In this document: positions 15,997 to 63,999 of the stretch, piece by piece
Layout: each line of letters begins with the position of its first letter
Numbering within the stretch: the first letter of the stretch is position 1
DNA from: Oopsacas minuta
Lineage: Eukaryota > Animalia > Porifera
Length of the DNA stretch: 64,000 nt
Reading direction: 5' to 3'
Assembly (NCBI GenBank): GCA_024704765.1
Contig: JAKMXF010000297.1
Span: 426,921-490,920 of the forward strand
The notes under the pieces: generated by a model
Seen by the model: the letters and a program-made list of their open reading frames with translations, nothing else
The model's database searches: none
What the model was told of the DNA's origin: nothing
Program-made: the position numbers and the translations under genes

Positions 15997-18393
15997 TTAT
16001 GGAATATTTGTCACAAAATTATCAAACCAAGCGTATCTTTTCAAAACCTCATCAATACACTCAGGAGAGGCTACATTGCAAGAGTAGTTGAAATAAATCC
16101 ATCTTTTCCAAAGAGCAAATTGATGTCCCAATTCCGTATCACACAATAGAGACTTGCATCGATAAAGAATTTGGAGGAATTTCTCATAATCTTCCGGTTC
16201 AGGTAATGAGGAAATTAAGTTGTGTATAGCTTGCCATATGGCAGTGTTATATCGATTTGGGCCAAGTTGCATTTCTTCTGCGAGAGCGAATATTTGATTC
16301 AACAGTTCGAAGTGATCGGGCCCAAATGTTGCGTGATTAGGATTATACTTTAGCTCAGTTAGTCTATCAGCTTTCTCCCTCAAAAGTTTAGCTCTCTCCA
16401 ATAATTCCTTGTTCTTAGGATCTGCTTCGAATTTACACAATCCACAATCACATTCATAATCCCATTTACTTAGAAGGTCTTTTTAACGTATATCATAGTC
16501 TATAATTTGCATACGTGGAGCAGTTAATTCAACTCCTGTAGCGATGTCATGATTAGCAAATATAATACAAACATCTCTATAAAACGTGAGTGAAGTATTC
16601 GGCATACAGGAATGATTCAAATATGCACGAATTAACCAAATACCATGAGTATGCATATACTCGTTATGAAGATGATCTGGATGGTGGTAAGAAAGTGCGT
16701 TATACTGTATTATAGTTCTGATCTGTTGCTGTTGGTATGGAGCTCTGTCTTTGTCCCTAACCAACTCATAACCTTTGCTACCGTATATTTCTATTGAGAT
16801 TGGCTCGTTATGGAGATGCTTATCATGCAAGGAAAATATGCGAAAAGCAGACAATTTGGATTTGATTATCGTATTTGTTAAGGAATCATTGAGCTTTGAG
16901 GAAGCTCTTGTCTTCGAAATGGCAATATGATCAGCAAAAATAGTATATTCTCCACGAAGATCTTCCAGATTTTCTTGCTTGTTGGGACCAACATATGCAA
17001 TAGCTTTTGTTACACTAATAATTTCCCCTCTCTTGATATCTCTAGTAGAGAATATGCCATGTCCGTTCTTATGAGAAGTTCCTATTTTGATCGGACCGAT
17101 AAAATCTGCAATTTCTATCTCTTCACCACTAGAAGCCTTTCCAGAAATTTCCTCAAAGTCAATCTTCCCTTTACTATTATCAAGTAGTTTCTGCTCTTTA
17201 GCGATGGCAGCAATGCGGTTAGGGTTAACTTCTATGTCATTCAAAATATCCAGACTCTTCTCGTGATCTCCCAATCCAGACCATGCCATAGCTAATCTGT
17301 ACCGGTATTTGGAATTATTTGGATCTATTTCTATGGCAGCCTCTGCGTCTCTTAGAGAATATTCAAATGAACCATTCTTTAAGTGGCAGAGAGAACGATT
17401 GATGAGATAAAGTGAAACAAACTCATCTCCTGTATTAATAGCTCGTGTATAACAAACAATTGCCTTGTCAAGATCACCATCTTGGAGGTATTTATTTCCT
17501 TCAATCTTGTGAAATTCACCTGAATTAGCTTCGTTAGAATCTTGTGGCATGTCCAGTATTATGATCTCTTCTGGAGATTCCACTCTAATAATATAGAACT
17601 CATCTGCTTGACCAATTTTGTAATAAGGATTGGCAATAGCCATCTTCACACCTTGCTTAAGAGATCCGCGCATTTCTGGGGTAATGTTATAGATGCATAA
17701 CTTGGCGCATTGTCCGAAATCATCTTCAACAACTGTGTGATAAGATGTCATCATATACCCATTAGTTATTTGAGTACAGAAAATAACTTTGTTGCTGTAA
17801 ACTATGCCGGGAGCTAGTTCTATTATTTTAATTGGTTCTAGATCACATAATTTGATAGGTTCTATAACCTTAGTAGCACTCAAATGGTCGTATGTAGTGC
17901 CTGACAAAATCGTAATAGTTATAGATTTCTGGTTATCCTGCGCTTGATCAAGCACAGGCTTTGGAGCCAATTCTTCATTTCTATTTATCAAGAATTCCTT
18001 TCTGTAATGACAGTTACTACCTGGGATACATACATCAGAGCGTAATTTACTGGACTCTCTACCAGTCATCATTTTAAAAAAGCGCGGTTCAATGTGTTTA
18101 AATACTTTATTTAAGATACTGAAAACTTTTTGGATTTTCCTCTCTGACTGGCCTACACATAGCTCCCTAACTGCGTCTTCTAACACTTGGTCATCAGTTT
18201 TACCTATACCACTGAGAGTATCTCGCATTCTCATATATATCTTCGTAACGGGAAGGTAGTGCTCCCTTAATAGAGCCTCATCACCTTTTGGTAAATGGCT
18301 TATATACTCTTCCATCATAGAATGGAATTCTTCTCGGATGTGAGGGGCGACATGCTCCAATATATTCCAATACTCATGTTTTATTTTTTCCAT
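15997..18393 (-). pseudogene. TPR + SET domain protein (798 codons) interrupted by one in-frame TAA; pseudogene allele, sequence error or recoded gene
   Basis: ORF 18393-16483 and ORF 16440-15997 are in the same frame, separated only by TAA at 16485-16483. Three TPRs (HKIEGNKYLQDGDLDKAIVCYTRAI...), SET (GHGIFSTRDIKRGEII...YLNHSCMPN), post-SET CDCGLC after the stop. Confidence 0.7.
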
Positions 18394-22193: not shown

Positions 22194-22553
22194 TACTCCA
22201 TAAATATCGAACTGTTATATTATAAATTAAAGATGTAGTAATTTGCATTGACCTCCTTTATCCAGGGTCTACTGTGCTAAGTCGGAAAATCACAATTTGA
22301 GCTAATAGTTTGAGTGAAGTAAATACTACAGTAGCAGTAATAGCTATCTATCATATTATCCAATTAATCATACAGAGAATATGTTGATTTCAGAATCCAG
22401 AAATCATAGCATACATAGTTTGGATAAATACATGCAGTGTGAATCCTCCTAATAAACTTCATTAGACATTATTATAGAACACACAAGAGGGCGGGAATGT
22501 TAGGCATGGGTATATGAACTACAGATGACCTATCTAACTAATTAACTAGAATT

Positions 22554-22577
22554 GGGCGGGTGTATAGAGTCCCGCCC
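22554..22577 (-). other. GC-rich perfect hairpin in eRF1 3' UTR
   Basis: GGGCGGG-actctataca-CCCGCCC (7-bp stem, 10-nt loop), 34 nt after the TAA. 35 of 46 nt at 22554-22599 are G/C. Confidence 0.7.
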
Positions 22578-22611
22578 GGCCTGCAGCTGGCACGCGCCCT
22601 CTTATCCTTCG

Positions 22612-25600
22612 TTAGAAGATGTCGTCATCAAACAGATCGTTATCATCAGATTCATACTCCATGTCCTGAAAGTCAACTTTGTATCTAAGGAGACCACCAA
22701 TCCCTCCAAACCCCCGACAGAACTGGGAGCCTTCTTGAGAGCGGTCAGTTATTATCTCCAATGCTGCGCCGAAGGTTTTGTAGTTGTTAGCAAACCATTC
22801 CAGGAGAGGTAGCTTTAAGAGAAAAGAAATATATTAAAATATTTATCCTATTTAAATTAGTTACAAGTATTAGATGGAAAGATCAGTTACTATTAATACA
22901 TTTATCATCATCAGGCCTAGTATATATAAATTTGTGAATAAATACAGAAATTCCATGAATATAAACCACTTAAATCATATTAAAGATAGCCGTGAGAACT
23001 TGTAGGATAGTTGAAATTAAATCAAATAATCAGTAAGAAGAATGTATATAATAGTTCGATTAGAATAGGGATCAGAGATTTTAGTCACCAGTTTGAGTCT
23101 AATTACTAATTTGGTAAAGGATTACAACCTAATCTCCTCATGGCATTGTGAAAACTCGAACATAATTGGTTAGAATCCGGAGCTATGAACCTCATAATTT
23201 CAGATAATGGCTATGTTACTGAATACTTTTGTGGGCATTTTTCATATAAATGTTGTTATATTAAATACAAAGATTTTGGGAAAATAATTATCCAAATTTT
23301 TTGTTGCATAATCAAATGAGGCGTGAAATTCAACAAAATACTTCTTCAAGAGGGTGGGATATATTTAATTCACAAGTCTTGGAGCCTTTTTCTAGCCTCG
23401 GGCGCTTATTCGGGGAAATACGGTAGTTAGTAAAAACGATGAAATTATTCAGCCAAGTCAGAATTTCTTACACCATAGAATAATCGTAAGAATAAATAGT
23501 TAGTGTTACCTACCTTGTCAACTAACTCCAGCTCTACGCCTGTAGTGGGATCATGGAACTTTGTCTTGTCTTGTTCCTGTTCTGGAGTTAAATGTAGAAT
23601 AATTTGACTATCTGCTGTATGGTTCATAAGGGTATATCGCGATATTTCCAGATTCTCCCAGACAATTAGAGTATCAACAGCTCCCATTTGTAGAGCTTTA
23701 AGAGTATCATCCACTCCGAAACAGTATTTGTTCGAATCTAGGGCAATCTCACCAAAATATTTACCAATCAATTTCTTTTCGTGAATAAATTTGACATTTG
23801 ACAACACTTCAACTGATAGTTCAATAGCTTGATTGAATCCATTCTCTCCACCATATGAAACATCAACTAGTTTCAGCACCTAGTACATATAAGTTGTCCT
23901 TATTATTACTGGTTAAAACTCTTGAAATTATCGGATCCATGGCTATAGTACATATAACAAGACAGCTATCTTGCAATATACAAATTACAGTTAGATTTCG
24001 GTTAGAAAGATGTACTCTCGGACTAGTTAGTACTATGTACTTTTCTCCAAAACGGATTATCAATTCTTGTGCTAATTGTATAGGAATAATATTCGGATAA
24101 GAAGTGTTATGGTTAGTACGCACTAGTACGGTACTTCTTATCCGAGTTCTACTGTATATGTTAATTCCAACAGTAACATTAGGATTAGGTGACACGTGAC
24201 AATGACCCATTCATAATAATTTTTGAGTACATACGTGTAATATTCCGCTAAACAATTATCAAAAAAGTTCCAAATGTTCTAACATAACTACTCTAATGTA
24301 AAACAAGACAAGAATACTCAGGGTTGAATATAGTGATTATCTGAAGTTTTAATATCAGGTAATGTGAAAATATGCATCATCCGAAAAACTTAGATTAATT
24401 CAATAATGACTGCTTGAGTCTACGTAGAATTTCTTACCAGAATAATTTGCGGCTGAACACAAACATTCGATATTTATCAATAAACAGTGTACTAATGCAT
24501 GAGTTAATGATTATTAGAAAATTACCTTAGTTTGCAGTCTGGGATCAAATAGATCAGCTGCGAATAAGTCTGTTTTGAAGTCAGCGCTCCCAGCTAGGAT
24601 AAGTCCTGTAACATTAACCTTATCATTTGATATGAACATCTGTATAGCTGTTTCTGCTACTTTTCTAACATAATTATGTCTTTTCTCAACTCTCAGGCGA
24701 GCGAACCGTACAGATGACTGTCCACCTTTAGAAATCAAATTATAATATCACGTAATAACAATAATACCGTATTTTTAAGAAGCATTTATAATATGCTATA
24801 CAGGGATATAGCATATTATAAATGTTTTTAACAATACGGTTCGTGTTACTAACCTCTCCCATGCTTCTTAGGCAAGTCAACACTGAACTTATGTAGCACA
24901 TCTCTCGTGTTACCAGAGAGAGTTCCAAAGAGTGCTCCTTTCCCATCTATAACAATGAATCCAAATTTATTGTCGTCATTAAGCAGTGCGGATAGTGCTT
25001 CAGTATGGAACTTGTTGTCACATAGATAGAGACTGGTGTTGATAGGCTTGAAAGGCTCAAAATCTATGTTAACCTTCTTCTCCTTTCCATCTTCTGTCAG
25101 AATAGTCCCACAGTATATCTATTTTGGTAGGACAAACACATAATTATAAATCTAGCAATTTAAGGCAGTAGGAGAGCCTTACAAGGAGAAATCACCCTCT
25201 TGAATTATAACCTCCATCATTAGGGGGTTAGCCAAATATACTAGACATAAATAATATCAATCTGGTATAATCTCGAATATCAAACGAGTTTGTGAATATA
25301 TTCATGGTACTGTGTATATTATATGAATACTAAACATATAACATATAGTGATGCTATAACGAGATATAGCCCCTACTACTTACCCATGTATATGGTACTT
25401 TATTGATAACAATAACAACATACTAATTACATAAATATACAGTAGAACCTCGTTAATAAGAACACGGTTAATACGAATTTCCGGATAATACGAACAAATA
25501 TTTGCACAAAATCAGGTCACTACAGTTGCAAATTAATTGGTATTACTCAGTTAATAAGATCAAATTGTGACAGTCCGTTGGTGTTCGTATTAACGAGGTC

Positions 25601-28600
25601 CCACTGTTATTAACGTTGTAAAATAAATTTTGCATTCTATATTGCATTTTTATGCAATTACTGCTTACACTTCCAACAAATATTGCAGAATAAGACCCGT
25701 AAAAGATTAGCTAATGAGAATTTTGATAACTAAGTGTGGCTGAAGAGAACATAAGGAGGTAATTGAGAAGTAATACTAGATTACTTAATTAGATATATAA
25801 TACTGCTAGTGAACTTTGGCTTCAAACATAACAAGCAAGTGTTTCTGGAGATCAAGTTCTGAATTAATTCAAAAGATAAGAGCAAATCTTGAATAGCATA
25901 ATGCAATGATTGAGCTATCGGATAATAATGTCGGGTAATGAGTCATTACATGAAAGAACCAACAATATAACTAATACAAAAGGTGCACCTTGTATACATC
26001 TCGAACAGATATGCAACATGAAAGTAATTGAAAGTAATTGGAATGTTTCATAAAGTATATTCGTCCTTACGATAGCATAATCGTGGTGCCATGTGATTCG
26101 CTGAGGCAAGAAGGATAGGATAGCAATTGATTATATGCAGGAACGCTTGTATACACAACACTGTAGACATAATTCAGGTTAAATTAGCAACGTAAAGCGC
26201 TTATGAATACATTTCAGTTCTACGTACTATACAGTAAAACATTCTTGTTTCAGTAATGCTTCACAGATGCTCATTTCCGTATCAGTGGAACCTGCATAAA
26301 CCGACACCTGTATGATCCGAAAGACTTCTACAATCTGACAGTGTTTCTGATCTGAAATAGCTTCAGACAATACAAAGTCTCTTGTATAATCCGCCAAAAA
26401 TATTCATGTCCCAACGGTGTCGGTTTATCCAGGTCCCATTGTACATAGCTTAAATAAGGCGAATTTGTCCACTTAATCAATTAAAGTATTTAAATCAGAC
26501 CACATTATTCATTATCAGCAATTAGGTTTATTGCTAACAGTTTGTTTAGATGATTCCACTTTTCTTGATTTCCTGAGTTTAACATAAATTGCAAACGAAA
26601 TCAGTTCTGTACGAGTATAAGCAACTTAGAGACTTCACATATTTCAAGAAAGAAATTGAAAAGTACTAATCACATAGTGTCTTCTTATAAGTGAATTAAT
26701 ATACATAGCTCTATGTATGTATTTTAAACCAATTTTACTAAGTGAATACCGGAATAGCTTCATAATTGAAGCTATCTTATACGTAGGCGGTCAATAAATT
26801 CCAATAGCACCTAATACAACATTTTATAGACCGAGAAAACACATATCAATAGTTTGGGGATTGTTTTAACTATGTCCGGGAAAAACCTAGGTCAACACTA
26901 TACAAATAGCGATAGGCGGCTACACGTATTGCTATTGCTATTCTATAGACCGGTTTCAACATTGGTAAATCGTATTCATTGATCATAGATGACGCCAGAA
27001 AAGATGTCTAGTGAATAATATGGTTGTGTGGGAGAATCGAACAAAGAATCGAGAAACAGTGAGGATTCCAAATCTGCCATCAGAAAATATTTGCCTCTCA
27101 AATTATATTTTTATTTGATCTTTGTATATTTCTAGATTATTATGTTCTTTTTCATAATGGTACAACTAGTTTACTTTTATTATAGATATAATTTACAAAA
27201 TTAACATCACGAACAGCATAACATAATGCTTGAGGATATCTACCATTTTCTCATTGTACTAACGAAATATTAGATAACGTAAGGCAACTATAACTAATTA
27301 TTATCAAAAATTCACTCAGTATTGCCGTATAGGCAGTGTAGATTTGAATCTCGGAACCACAATATTACATTATTTCCGCACAGGCATTATTTATTTATTT
27401 ATTTTTGAAATCTATGTTCAGTTACAAATATTTTAAGTAGAAAATCAATGATCAGTTTAAAGTAACATTTTCTCGATAGAAGATTAGACAATAATTATCT
27501 AAGCATAAAGAAACGGTTAATATCCGTCCGTAACTATCAAATCATTTTAGAATCATGTAATATTCATAAAAAATAGCCAATGATTACAATCCTAAGTTTA
27601 TATTCAATTATTTTTACGTAAAACATATTTCTTAAAACTATTGTTATTAAGCACATGAATTAAATATATTCCTCTTCCCGAGATTATAATTTTACATAAT
27701 AAATGTATAATTATTTAAAGAACTTATTCAACTATGCTTGGTGAGAAATGGAATAATTAGATTGTTCTGATTAATCAGATTAATATATATTCATTGTTAT
27801 TCTACATAAAACATTTCAATTTATAATTTAGATATTAATCGTAATCAGCTGACTATTGGATCCCCTTTGCTATATGTGTCACATTTCGGCTACACTACAT
27901 CTATTATGATCACATTGTTAATATGAAACCCCTGGGGAACTTTGAGTATGAAATTGAGGAAACAAATGATGAACGAATGCATAAAGTTTGAGTCAGAGTT
28001 TCCTATAAAAAAACTAAAAAAGTACTAACTTCTAATTATAATTCTTCCTACGCAATCTTTAAATTTCAACCATGTTTTGCGTTCCAGTGTGCTAGATCCA
28101 CATCGAAAGTAGCGGGGCCGACCCCCCTAATTTGGCTAATTCTATGACTATGTTTGCTAGCAGGTGTGTAGCCCTACCTACCTATTCTTGCAAACGTGTT
28201 TTTCTGATTTCCTATCGCGCACCTGGGAAATAAGGGGTTTGCCCAACTTTAGCAGAGAGATGGATTCTACCAATCAGCATTCATATGAATAAATAATTAC
28301 ATTATTACAGTATACTCACATAATTGCAAAAGGAAGTCCTTATTAGAGATCGCAAGCCCGAGCCCTAGGTTCTTCGAGCTCGGCCGGGCTGAGTTTCGAG
28401 CCTATAATTTAGAATCTCAAATTAACCGCAAATTGCATGAAATTTCGAAAGAATTTCCTCTCAATTGTTTTATTAAATTGAATCAACTTTTGAAATTATT
28501 CATTGACATTCACTGTATGATCTGGTACTAAAAATTTGACATTCTATTTCTAGAAATATTCTAAACGTATAAAATAAATCTATAGGCAGACAAATTTTCT

Positions 28601-30704
28601 TATAAGGTTTAGGATGTCTTTCGATATATAAAACGAGCCGCTTAACTTACTCGCGCTGCGTGGAGTGCGAACACTTTTTGTTAGCATGGGACTCAGCACT
28701 TCATGTCTCGAATTTAGCAAACTATAAAATTACAAATTGAATTAATATATTAATATTTTAACAATTTGTTTACTTTATATTCATAAAACAACAATAAATT
28801 TAAATATGAGAAACTTGAAAATGAGAAATTCGGATTTAACGTGCTTGATGACGCCTATATGTCTGTGAGAGCAAGTCTCTAAGTATATTTATAGATTTCA
28901 ACTACGTATTTGTTTACTTATATTCATAAAACAACAATAAATTTACATATGATTAATTAGAAAGTGCGAAAATCGGAATCAGCATACTGGATTACCCCAA
29001 TGTAATTGTGTACTTTTTCCTATATCGTCAGCAGAAGGATATGTTATTCCCTTTATTATATACGCAGATCATCTTCCCCTATCATGAGAATACAAAGTGG
29101 ACAAACAAACAAACATCCAACAATTATTGAGTTTAAATAATATAGATATATTGATTGGATTTATTGTGTAGAATTGAATGGCGGAAGTTATATTGCTGGA
29201 TTGTTCGTCCCAAAAATCCGCGCCTAAATTCACCCCTGGAATTTTCATTCAAGATTTCGTCTCCTTATTGATTAGTTGTAATCTAGTGGCCTCTAAACAT
29301 CACAAAAATATGTCCCTAAATCTAAAGCGAGTTAAGAGACTCTGGACTGTTTGGAGCACAATTACTGCTCACCAACCACTAGTCTATGAAATACGCTGAT
29401 CCTATATCTTCTAGAGCGCATTGTAATACACTGGAACTTCAATTAGACTTCGAATAATTGGGTTAATTGGACAATCCATTCCATAGAACAATTTTACAAT
29501 AATTAACCGTAATTCAAGACTTTTACCACTAAACTAAAGCTTAGTAATAGTATGAGGATGAGAATGACCAAACATAGAAGAACGATATTGCGCTAGGCGT
29601 GCTAGTCTTGACTAAGAGTATTCAAAGTCATTGCTAATATAGTTATATAACTACTACGAAATTATTAATAGATTCACACACATTTTATAGGATCACCATA
29701 AATCAGAATTAACATAACCAATAAACATATGAATCCATAAAACGTCTTAGTATATTCTCTTGTAGCCAGGAAAACAGGAGAAAGGTTAGATGAGGTGAAT
29801 TGTTTTAATCAGAATAGTAAAATTCAAACATGGCTAGCGAAATTTCATTTCATAACGTAGTAAATCTAGCCGGAAGTCAAGTATTATTTAGGTATTGGCG
29901 GAGCGTAAACAAGGACATGAATTTTCATATCTTAATTACTAATAGTATTGTCTAGGCATGTATTTTCTCAAACTCTCATGGACAATGGCCTCACTTTGAA
30001 TAAATATAGCGAGTCATGAAAACACCCAAGTCGACTTGTTTGTTCATGTTTGGTTACGTTTAATCATGTCTGTATTTAGCCCATGACCGTAGAAATCAAC
30101 TAAAAAGTGACGTAAAATCTCTAGACGTATGAAAATTATTAGATTGCCATTTCAGGTGTAGGACCCTCATAAACATATGATTTCAGCTGAACTGGGATTC
30201 CCAGGAATTTTGGTTTGGTGGACATTTGCCCACAAACTAGAAATCTTAGGTACCAGAAAGATTCCATTATATCTTTCACGCAAGACGCAACTAAGATATA
30301 TATTTGTATGAGATCTTGATGAGAAATCAGGATCTCATGGGCCACAATACCAGTGAGTAAGCGAACAAGTAGAAGGCGAATATTACTATATATTTTAATC
30401 ATTCCGTAAAACTCACCACAAGCCCATTGGTAGGCACCTTACTGTACAGTTTGAGTCGATGTTGTACTGAAGTTATAGCACTCTGCACTGAGAGACGATT
30501 GACTCTACTTTTGATACTGCTAGCAGTCCCGGACTCTCCGGCTAACATCTTGCAGATTCGAGGGATCTGATCTTTAGGAGGAATGATTAGAGATATCATA
30601 CTTGTGCCGTTCCCACGGGCAGCCTCTAGACTCTTTATTAGTCGCTTTATTTTCCACATCTCAACATTCTGGTCACCAGAATTCTGTGTGAAGTTCACAG
30701 CCAT
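22612..30704 (-). CDS. ETF1: Eukaryotic peptide chain release factor 1 (eRF1), 5 exons, 439 aa
   Basis: Exons 30704-30417, 25118-24854, 24725-24526, 23879-23514, 22812-22612 (1320 nt, all GT-AG, frame intact). GTS loop, [13 protein letters not shown] and GFGGIGG present. NIKS replaced by SIKS. Confidence 0.97.
24010..24154. mobile_element. CAGTAGAACTCGG-family MITE in eRF1 intron 3 (left end approximate)
   Basis: Right end CTTATCCGAGTTCTACTG|TA. Internal attatcaattcttgtgctaattgtat shared with the copy at 54295-54472. Confidence 0.55.
25440..25606. mobile_element. CAGT-ended MITE in eRF1 intron 1
   Basis: TIRs CAGTAGAACCTCGTTAATAAGAACAC / GTGTTCGTATTAACGAGGTCCCACTG. Confidence 0.8.
26283..26441. 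mobile_element. CAGT-ended MITE in eRF1 intron 1
   Basis: TIRs CAGTGGAACCTGCATAAACCGACACC / GGTGTCGGTTTATCCAGGTCCCATTG|TA. Confidence 0.8.
28634..29146 (-). mobile_element. Non-autonomous Helitron-like element with CTCG 3' end, copy A (eRF1 intron 1)
   Basis: On the minus strand: A|TCTATATTA 5' end, (GTTT)n, internal repeat tttatgaatataaagtaaacaaat, GC-rich hairpin, CTCG|T 3' end. Homologous to 47896-48575. Confidence 0.75.
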
Positions 30705-32239: not shown

Positions 32240-32644
32240 TTAATCAAACCATTGAGATATAAACACATTGGAGAGGTTAGTCTCGTTCAAACACTCATCT
32301 TCCTCAAACTTGTGTAATTGTTGCTTCATCTGTCCACCAGATATCCTCAGAGCAAGTAAGGTAGGAATACTATTCAGAGAGAATACTCCAGTCCTAAATT
32401 CATTCTTAGGATCTATCCACGAATCTCTACCACCAACTTCACACCTAATAAACTCCAAACTACTCCTTCGCTTCTCGCTAGTTGACAGAATTATGTTCTT
32501 AGAAGCATCGCAATCAGAACACCAACTAACCCCAGTTTCTAATGAGGATCCGTAGAAGTATATTACAACATCCTTGGTCCCGAGCGAAGTTAAATGAGTC
32601 TCTAATTCTTTCACAGATGAAAATATTTCGCTTGCTGATGCCAT
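32240..32644 (-). CDS. TXNDC17: Thioredoxin domain-containing protein 17 (TRP14, DUF953), intronless
   Basis: YFYGS....SWCSDC, CEVGGRDSWIDPKNEFR, SIPTLL, FEEDECL follow the TXNDC17 pattern. Confidence 0.85.
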   Translation of the reverse strand: MASASEIFSSVKELETHLTSLGTKDVVIYFYGSSLETGVSWCSDCDASKNIILSTSEKRRSSLEFIRCEVGGRDSWIDPKNEFRTGVFSLNSIPTLLALRISGGQMKQQLHKFEEDECLNETNLSNVFISQWFD

Positions 32645-34779: not shown

Positions 34780-35100
34780 TTACAAAATCTTATATTTTGT
34801 TTTCTGTTTCTTTAGAAAATATATTTCTTTGCGAATATTTTCAAATTCTCTCACTAATTCTGCTTTTACAATCTCTAAATATTCGATCTCTTCAACTTCT
34901 TTCTGTCTTCTCTTCCGAGAATATTCTTTCATTTTTGAACGTCTCCTGGTCTCTTTAATATGCGATGCTTCTTCTTTCGTAAAGCCTTCTTTCTGTAGGA
35001 GTTTATTAAGTACTTTAATATCGAGGTTAGTGATATTTTGATGTGATAAGGGCATGTCAACATTTCCAAGTATGTCGATTGGATCGAATAAATCATCCAT
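34780..35100 (-). CDS. Small Maf-like bZIP protein (106 aa) with divergent basic region
   Basis: Extended homology region LDIKVLNKLLQKEGFTKEEASHIKETRRR, basic region RRRSKMKEYSRKRR, zipper heptads L-L-I-L-Y. Confidence 0.75.
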   Translation of the reverse strand: MDDLFDPIDILGNVDMPLSHQNITNLDIKVLNKLLQKEGFTKEEASHIKETRRRSKMKEYSRKRRQKEVEEIEYLEIVKAELVREFENIRKEIYFLKKQKTKYKIL

Positions 35101-61861: not shown

Positions 61862-62377
61862 CCCACTTGTCAAGAATATGTCTGTCAGGGAACTGTCTAA
61901 TCAGTGGATTATTCAATCTGAGCCTGTAAAACCACAAGAAAAGCGAAATTGTTAACAAATAGGGAACCCTCATTATTCATACGGAATATGTACACATTGC
62001 ACAGATCAATCGCTACGCTGAATTAAATTTAAGATTAGAATGAAAGTAATCATACTGTAGTACTTGAAAAGGTTTTACGTATAAAAGAGTGTCCTAAACA
62101 CCTAAACACAGGAATAGTTAAAATATTAATGGCAGTACCACTTTTGAAATTGTGCGCCAGTGCTTTCCATGATTACGTAACGCAGAATATACCCATTATC
62201 CTAGAAGTGACATTATTAAAGTTTAAACAGTCCATTTAATGTGAGAAAGCATCAAGTTTTGTTGATTGTTATGGAGAGTATTATCTAAAGCATAAATTCA
62301 CCTAAGAAACTAACATTCAACATCCAAATCATAAATTCATAATGCTATCCCAGATGACATAAGGCTGAGACAGAATG

Positions 62378-62416
62378 AAGCGCTGGGGATCGGCCCTGAG
62401 GGCGGGTCCCGCGCTT
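62378..62416 (-). other. GC-rich long hairpin in ABCE1 3' UTR
   Basis: AAGCGC-GGGA-CCC-GCCC-tca-GGGC-CGA-TCCC-CA-GCGCTT, 17 nt after the TAA. 29 of 39 nt are G/C. Confidence 0.7.
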
Positions 62417-62433
62417 ATACAAACACCCAACGG

Positions 62434-63999
62434 TTAGGAGTCAATGAAGAAATAATTCCCACTGGCTTTCTGCTCGGAATCTTTAACTGAATGGAGCTTG
62501 TTAATCCTAGGACGATGATTGCTAGGATCACGTCGGAATGTTATCTCAAGAGATTTGAGGAATTTATTAATCCCTGTCAGCAGAATCTGAGGACTAGTAG
62601 CTAGCGTTTTAACAGAAGGAATACCTTCAAACACGATAACACGATCAGCGAGATAGGTAGCCATTATGAAGTCATGTTCTACTATAAATGCAGTCTTCTT
62701 TGCGTGAAGAATAAATCGTTTTATAACTTTAGAAGCAATCAGCCGCTGCTCAGAGTCCAAATAAGCAGACGGTTCATCTATTAGATAAATATCAGCTGGT
62801 TTTCCTAGACATAGAGTAATAGCAACTCTCTGTAGCTCTCCTCCTGATAAATGCTTCACTGATTGATCATACAAGTTCTCCATGTTGAGAGGTTTAATGA
62901 CGTCACTAATGAATTGTGGGTGTATGTATGCATCTCTGATCTTAGAATGAAACAGCTGTTGTACACTCCCATCAAATGAAGGAGATATCTTCTGAGGCTT
63001 ATAGCTTATGTTAAGTTGTGGAATCTCTATCCCACTCTCTGGAGGAGTGAGGCCAGCTAGCATTCTGATGAAAGTAGTCTTACCAGTGCCATTCTCTCCC
63101 AATAACACGATTATTTCAGAGTCCGTAAACTCTCCCTCCACAACGGATAATGAGAACTCACCCAGGTTCTTATCCATGTTAGGGTAACCATAACGTCTAA
63201 TACGCTTAACCTCCTCACTCTCAGTCGTCTCTGCTACTTTGAAAACAAGATTAGTGGGACGAAAACGTAGATTTTCGGTAGGAATGAATCCGTCCAGGAA
63301 AATATTGATCCCTTCCCGTACCCCAGCTGGGAGTGTCACTACTCCATACACCCCTGGTACCCCATACAGACAACAGATAAAGTCAGAGAGGTAGTCTAAT
63401 ACAGAGAGATCATGCTCTACTACAACTACGTAGTTCTCAGGAGATAAAAGTTTACGAATAGCTTGAGCTGCATTTAATCGTTGTTTGACATCTAAGAAGG
63501 AGGAAGGTTCATCAAACATGAAAACATCAGCTTGTTGTAGACAGGCTAATGCACAAGCAAATCTCTGTAGCTCTCCTCCTGACAACTCAGAGATATCTCT
63601 ACCTCTTAAGTTCCCAAGTTCAAACATTTCTACGTATCTGTCTTGCTCCTTCTTTTCGTCCTTCTTGTCCAGTAACTGCTGGACAGATCCCTTCACAGCT
63701 TTAGGGATCTGATCAACAGATTGAGGCTTGATCACAGCTTTCACTTTGTCTTCCAGTACTCGCATGAAATAGCTCTGTAGCTCAGAGCCCCTAAAGTGTA
63801 TGAGTATGTCTTTCCAGTCAGGAGGCTGGTCCCACCTGCCTAGATTCGGTTTCAGCTTTCCAGCTAGGATCTTAAGTGCAGTAGATTTACCTATGCCATT
63901 AGTGCCTACCAGTCCCAGCACCTGACCAGGTCTGGGCATAGGCAGACGATGCAATTTGAATGAGTTAGCACTGTAGCGATGAGTCGTGTCTTTATTCAG
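62434..63999 (-). CDS. ABCE1: ABCE1 (RLI1) ribosome recycling ATPase; 5' end (Fe-S domain) outside window
   Basis: [14 protein letters not shown], Walker [10 protein letters not shown] and GENGTGKTT, two LSGGELQR signatures, [20 protein letters not shown]. More than 1.5 kb without an intron. Confidence 0.98.

Follow-up and report, generated by a model that had tools for sequence, protein, structure and literature searches.

Replacement of the NIKS asparagine in the eRF1 of glass sponges with an apparently standard genetic code

The first uridine (U1) of a stop codon is contacted by residues Asn61 and Lys63 of the release factor eRF1, as visualized by cryo-EM (Matheisl 2015) and as also reported by Hoernes (2018). 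In simulations, discrimination of the base is performed by Lys63, and Asn61 provides a stabilising contact to the sugar of U1 (Lind 2017). Asn61 is the first residue of the NIKS motif, where its conservation among standard-code eRF1s is regarded as universal, and the neighboring residue Ile62 is packed upon by Val71. Human eRF1 with an N61S substitution keeps ribosome binding and stimulation of the eRF3 GTPase (102%), and, in a reconstituted system, this substitution alone causes an almost complete loss of release activity (Kryuchkova 2013). Full activity was seen for a human eRF1 that contains Euplotes residues 51–69, with Ser61 beside Glu60 (Eliseev 2011). Conversely, conversion of the TAESIKS loop of Euplotes eRF1 to TASNIKS removes its frameshift-promoting activity. 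Based on the human N61S, chimera and reversion data, Ser61 is viable only in the right context. As the original prediction for the locus described here had stated, Ser at the Asn61 position is known from ciliates with variant codes. It occurs in Euplotes (TAESIKS), which had been named there, and in Paramecium (SIKD).

A variant of this kind is found in the glass sponge Oopsacas minuta. The analyzed stretch of DNA, referred to as the window, comprises 64,000 nucleotides (GenBank assembly GCA_024704765.1, contig JAKMXF010000297.1, positions 426,921 to 490,920). It contains an open reading frame on the minus strand at 30399–30704 that starts at an ATG at 30704 and begins MAVNF. A gene model built from splice sites extends this frame into five exons that together span 1,320 nt and encode 439 amino acids followed by a TAA stop codon:

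Exon 1, 30417..30704, minus strand: codons 1–96, with the ATG at 30704, the donor GTG/GTGAGT and a Pfam eRF1_1 match (E = 4.6e-13).
Exon 2, 24854..25118, minus strand: end of the N domain with YLCDNKF, and start of the M domain.
Exon 3, 24526..24725, minus strand: the GGQ loop, with GGQSSV at 24709–24723 plus a split Gly codon.
Exon 4, 23514..23879, minus strand: end of the M domain, and the C domain.
Exon 5, 22612..22812, minus strand: stop codon TAA at 22612–22614.

Exon borders are AG/GT throughout, and the splice sites and reading frame are intact, as had been anticipated for the frame. The three-domain architecture is present, as Pfam eRF1_1, eRF1_2 and eRF1_3 are all matched and every exon matches one of them. 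The spliced protein is collinear with human eRF1 (PDB 3E1Y/1DT9) over 430 residues with no insertions or deletions (E = 3e-228, about 80% identity), and it groups with animal eRF1 in a phylogenetic tree. It is also identical to NCBI entry KAI6652895.1, [quoted passage not shown], and the gene is therefore already annotated. The protein is thus present in databases as an ordinary eRF1, and the variant in its most conserved decoding motif is previously unremarked: literature searches for SIKS or for sponge together with NIKS returned no mention of it, and eRF1 and stop codons go unmentioned in both glass-sponge genome papers.

The original prediction, which was made from the letters of this DNA, had described a rewritten stop-codon-reading loop at 30507–30539. 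Codons 56–66 of the model map to exactly these positions on the minus strand and correspond to human residues 54–64 (DEFGTASNIKS); they cover the end of helix alpha2 together with the TASNIKS loop, here in variant form. Sponge residue numbers are those of human eRF1 plus two; human numbers are used below for substitutions. Two codons recur in what follows:

Codon 63 (human Asn61 position), 30516..30518, minus strand: AGT, encoding Ser; AGC in the related loci L001 and L002, and TGT (Cys) in L003.
Codon 74 (human Leu72 position), 30483..30485, minus strand: CAG, encoding Gln.

The NIKS tetrapeptide with Asn61 is absent from the O. minuta protein, which has SIKS instead. Because the alignment to human eRF1 is free of gaps, the substitutions S46P, D54G, F56S, N61S and L72Q, all five of which had been named beforehand, and the additional A49C are correctly placed. 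The S46P change is not unusual, since rotifers also carry Pro at this position. Much of the standard-code protein (human ETF1; PDB 1DT9, 3E1Y, 3JAG, 5LZT) is shared with the sponge, including the three domains, GTS (33 in sponge numbering), YLCDNKF of the YxCxxxF motif (127) and GGQ (185–187), as well as residues Glu55, Lys63 and Ser70. GTS, YxCxxxF and GGQ had been described as intact, and all are present; the sequence that flanks GGQ is, however, SSV in place of SAL. This replacement of the near-invariant Ala-Leu by Ser-Val (GGQSALRF to GGQSSVRF; 24709–24714, minus strand) occurs in five of five glass-sponge eRF1s, so that both the decoding loop and the catalytic loop region are altered. In addition to the changes at residues 49, 54, 56, 61 and 72 and in the GGQ flank, the Oopsacas protein differs from human eRF1 at about eight further near-invariant positions.

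The distribution of these changes was examined in related organisms. A word search with exon 1 recovered three close relatives on long ENA contigs, two with SIKS (P0001 and P0002) and one with DEFGTASCIKS (P0003), and among the best 120 exon-1 fragments these three are the only ones that lack Asn61 and Leu72. At the relatives' loci L001, L002 and L003, complete five-exon eRF1 genes are found with the exon borders of Oopsacas. The donor of intron 2 is GT in Oopsacas and L003, and GC in L001 (15285–15290, gcaagt) and L002 (15306–15311, gcgagt). The gene order of a Maf-type bZIP, a TXNDC17-like (TXD17) thioredoxin and eRF1 is shared by Oopsacas, L001 and L002:

Maf and TXD17 neighbors of eRF1, window 32240–32644 and 34780–35100, minus strand: order also found in L001 and L002.

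A fifth sequence, a complete Trinity transcript from Vazella pourtalesii (P0123; EukProt EP00800), encodes SIKS and Gln72, and Ser61 is therefore present at the RNA level in a relative. Full-length eRF1s were retrieved with an intronless giant-virus eRF1 as the scaffold of the alignment. This viral gene (L004:1974–3254; metagenome contig IMGVR GVMAG-M-3300012920-30) is itself full length, encodes 426 amino acids and has canonical TASNIKS, YMCDSKF and GGQ motifs.

In this comparison, Asn61 is invariant in the 156 full-length eRF1s from outside the glass sponges, and it is present in 282 of 289 eRF1s with a scorable motif, the seven exceptions being all from glass sponges. Similarly, Leu72 occurs in every one of these 156 full-length eRF1s, and Gln72 in all five glass-sponge sequences. 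No change of N61 or L72 was found in about 280 other eRF1s that were fetched, a set biased towards animals that includes calcareous sponges and demosponges. Sycon (Calcarea), Dysidea and Halichondria (Demospongiae), cnidarians and deuterostomes have the canonical motif, and SIKS or CIKS is thus confined, among the sponges and other metazoans compared, to glass sponges. At 13 positions whose conservation reaches 95% or more in the 156 other full-length eRF1s, all five glass sponges differ: N61S/C, L72Q, V101L, M151I, N154K, A187S, L188V, E235D, Q238A, S239A, M241L, Q282H and G299N, of which A187S and L188V constitute the altered GGQ flank. D54G is present in four of the five glass-sponge sequences and F56S in Oopsacas only. 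Maximum-likelihood analysis places the five glass-sponge eRF1s in a clade with 100/100 support on a long stem (0.28 changes per column), within which L003, with its Cys, branches as sister to the other four. By the original prediction's own standard, a SIKS form widespread in standard-code relatives would speak against it. Glass-sponge relatives do carry SIKS or CIKS widely, and what looked like one aberrant gene thereby becomes a trait of the class. For the sampled sponges (Oopsacas, Vazella, L001, L002 and L003, a set without Amphidiscophora), loss of Asn61 is likely to reflect a Hexactinellida-wide trait of the sole eRF1, in the form of a compensated variant. As such, it would provide a clean molecular synapomorphy for Hexactinellida.

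The variant protein is also under very strong purifying selection. Across the four genomic glass-sponge eRF1s, pN is 0.02–0.07 and pS is 0.5–0.9, the latter being saturated, and dN/dS is approximately 0.01–0.05 in the whole gene, the N domain and the loop region alike. Exon 2 shows 98–100% amino-acid identity between glass sponges. Oopsacas encodes Ser61 by AGT and both L001 and L002 by AGC, a synonymous difference, and a single step separates the Ser codon from TGT, the Cys codon of L003. Judged from these comparisons of codons, the Ser/Cys state at position 61 is old and maintained. The same data bear on the idea that the locus is a pseudogene or owes its sequence to a mistake in sequencing or assembly. 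A Logan contig from a public run (X3), assembled independently, covers 29120–30656 with 0 differences, which speaks against the assembly error at codon 63 that had been considered. Logan contigs of public runs from the same organism match exon 1 at every base, and Logan contigs from related organisms B and C are collinear with this region, the listed exon-1 differences being all synonymous third positions. The Logan contigs compared at eRF1 come from genomic-like runs; a search for RNA runs of Oopsacas returned none. Together with replacement of Asn61 in four other data sets by means of different codons, and with the intact reading frame and splice sites, this agreement makes an artefact almost inconceivable.

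The original prediction had further raised the possibility of a specialised paralog, in which case a canonical NIKS eRF1 would be encoded elsewhere in the genome. The search for it covered the 64-kb window and protein databases, and nothing speaks directly in its favor. Among the best 120 matches to the Vazella protein, no second eRF1 from Oopsacas, from Vazella or of glass-sponge-like character was present, and the next match scored 813 versus 993 bits. In the genomic runs, no second eRF1 contig was found over exons 1 and 2 at a likeness of at least 80%, and these exons have a single contig depth. Likewise, a tblastn search with E values up to 10 for an alternative NIKS first exon, which took in the 5.3-kb intron 1 and the rest of the 64-kb window, returned the known exon only. 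No second sponge copy was seen among 120 exon-1-sized fragments, of which those inspected from outside the sponges came from rotifers, fungi or other animals. These searches of protein databases, window and contigs would detect a paralog down to a similarity of about 79% in protein or 80% in nucleotide sequence, below which one could escape. In view of the missing second copy, the synteny that is kept in three species and the constraint that extends across all domains, a specialised paralog is very unlikely. The locus is instead probably a single, orthologous and functional ETF1/eRF1 gene, which is one part of the preferred reading alongside compensation and retained omnipotence.

Intron 1 itself contains repeats of very high copy number (25394–25789, 26186–26383 and 28562–29155). 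In runs of three organisms, the contig depth summed over these repeats exceeds that of the flanks 10- to 1,000-fold, and many internal deletion joints are present. They resemble small transposon or MITE families common to related sponges.

The presence of Ser61 in the eRF1s of Euplotes, where UGA encodes Cys, and of Paramecium, where UAR encodes Gln, is the observation that would favor a reassigned stop codon or variant nuclear code in the sponge. The Euplotes protein, which is UAR-only and promotes frameshifting at stops, shares the Ser at the Asn61 position and differs by S60E and by S70A, the change that switches off UGA reading. In the sponges, Ser60 and Ser70 are both retained and TGA serves as a stop. 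At all four glass-sponge loci, Ser70 is retained and is encoded by TCA or TCC. The Paramecium protein, which combines SIKD with an altered YxCxxxF motif and is UGA-only, also shares the Ser. In contrast to this protein and to Stylonychia-type UGA-only eRF1s, the sponges keep Ser64 and the canonical YLCDNKF, and TAA and TAG are stops. Gene content points in the same direction. The 12 domain-supported ORFs of the window contain 4,464 codons with 0 in-frame stops, so that in-frame TGA, and with it any use of UGA as a sense codon, is not seen in these codons. In a small sample of about 24 gene ends, TAA is commonest, TGA ends the genes for MCRS1 and a glycosyltransferase, and TAG ends that for PLD. 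Moreover, the TXD17 stop codon is TAA in Oopsacas and L001 and TGA in L002. Standard-code gene models reach a BUSCO score of 91–93%. Because all three stop codons end genes and no in-frame stops occur, no reassignment is indicated. A variant code is extremely unlikely, and the eRF1 change looks like one in which the standard code is kept.

Among the ORFs of the window, one at 16483–18393 (minus strand) encodes 636 amino acids with TPR, TTC5-OB and SET domains and ends in TAA. A second ORF of 147 amino acids without a Pfam match (15997–16440, minus strand) is located 43 nt downstream on the same strand.

The substitution in the sponges with Ser61 is identical to that of the human N61S mutant, and the N domains are very similar. 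The mutant is nearly inactive in release with normal stimulation of the eRF3 GTPase, whereas the sponge protein is a conserved and apparently sole copy. As the apparently sole eRF1 of living animals, it must work in its own context. Since the human mutant is nearly inactive and U1 contacts Asn61, we infer rather than observe full activity of the sponge eRF1. Lys63, the main discriminator of the first uridine, is kept along with Glu55, GTS, YxCxxxF and Ser70, and UAA, UAG and UGA would therefore still be read. The sequence of events is proposed as follows. In the stem lineage of Hexactinellida, eRF1 would have lost the Asn of NIKS, which is now Ser in four data sets and Cys in the earlier-branching fifth. 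The same stem lineage would have fixed L72Q and about 11 other changes at otherwise near-invariant positions, including the two residues after GGQ-S, and F56S and A49C would be later changes. Loss of the contact between Asn61 and U1 may have been compensated within eRF1, with L72Q as the best candidate and D54G as a candidate in one subclade, or by the ribosome. L72Q is considered the best second-site candidate because it is one residue away from Val71, which packs on Ile62, and because it is both unique to and universal in glass sponges. By analogy, the active human eRF1 with Euplotes residues 51–69 may serve as a precedent for compensation; against the Euplotes route itself, S60E is not present in sponge eRF1s. 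On the evidence of these comparisons, we favor with reasonable confidence an eRF1 in glass sponges that is compensated and still omnipotent. A class that has replaced Asn61 twice over, by Ser and by Cys, with the standard code apparently kept would constitute a natural suppressor experiment, in which L72Q, D54G and the GGQ flank are the second-site candidates for tolerance of the lost contact.

The original prediction had also proposed altered or leaky stop recognition. [quoted passage not shown] Its consequences could be raised readthrough, +1 frameshifting similar to that of Euplotes or a dependence on context or 3′ UTR signals. The near abolition of release by N61S in human eRF1 in vitro, the end of frameshift promotion when TASNIKS is restored in Euplotes eRF1 and the altered GGQ flank are consistent with this explanation. 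So is the TAA-C context of the eRF1 stop codon in Oopsacas, L001 and L002, which is followed by a conserved and structured 3′ UTR. The strong purifying selection on the loop, however, suggests an optimised rather than a degraded state; long ORFs are intact, gene ends look ordinary, the BUSCO value was reached by standard prediction, and no conserved frame follows the eRF1 stop, where a 1-nt indel occurs. Incomplete compensation is accordingly regarded as unlikely. A stronger form of the idea is improbable, namely that glass-sponge termination is intrinsically weak or context-dependent, with widespread readthrough or Euplotes-like frameshifting, and that the 3′ elements after the eRF1 and ABCE1 stops act as autoregulatory sensors of termination efficiency. 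If compensation were incomplete, unusual termination fidelity would be predicted in the syncytial glass sponges. The compensated and omnipotent eRF1 remains the preferred reading.

The segment that follows the eRF1 stop codon is located as follows:

eRF1 3′ UTR segment, window 22520..22611, minus strand: directly after the stop codon, conserved in four glass sponges.
eRF1 3′ UTR segment in relatives: L001:18925–19016, L002:19869–19960 and L003:15084–15175.

In the four glass sponges, these approximately 90 nt are far better conserved than the synonymous sites of the coding sequence. The segment contains a GC-rich hairpin (z of −0.4 to −4.4) and a conserved CUAGUUAAU...UAGAUAGGUC tail. In L003, the stop codon is followed by CGGC in one reading (TAA-C), and TAA is followed by A in another. 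Programmed readthrough into a conserved coding extension was considered for this segment and rejected, as the reading frame differs between species because of the 1-nt indel, and the in-frame TAG is missing in L002. The segment may regulate the expression of eRF1 and is possibly linked to the eRF1 variant.

ABCE1, the ribosome-recycling partner of eRF1, is encoded on the same strand at a distance of 32 kb, with a large exon at 62434–63954 (minus strand). This gene ends in TAA-C, after which a GC-rich hairpin is found at 62340–62433 (MFE −33 kcal/mol, z −1.9).
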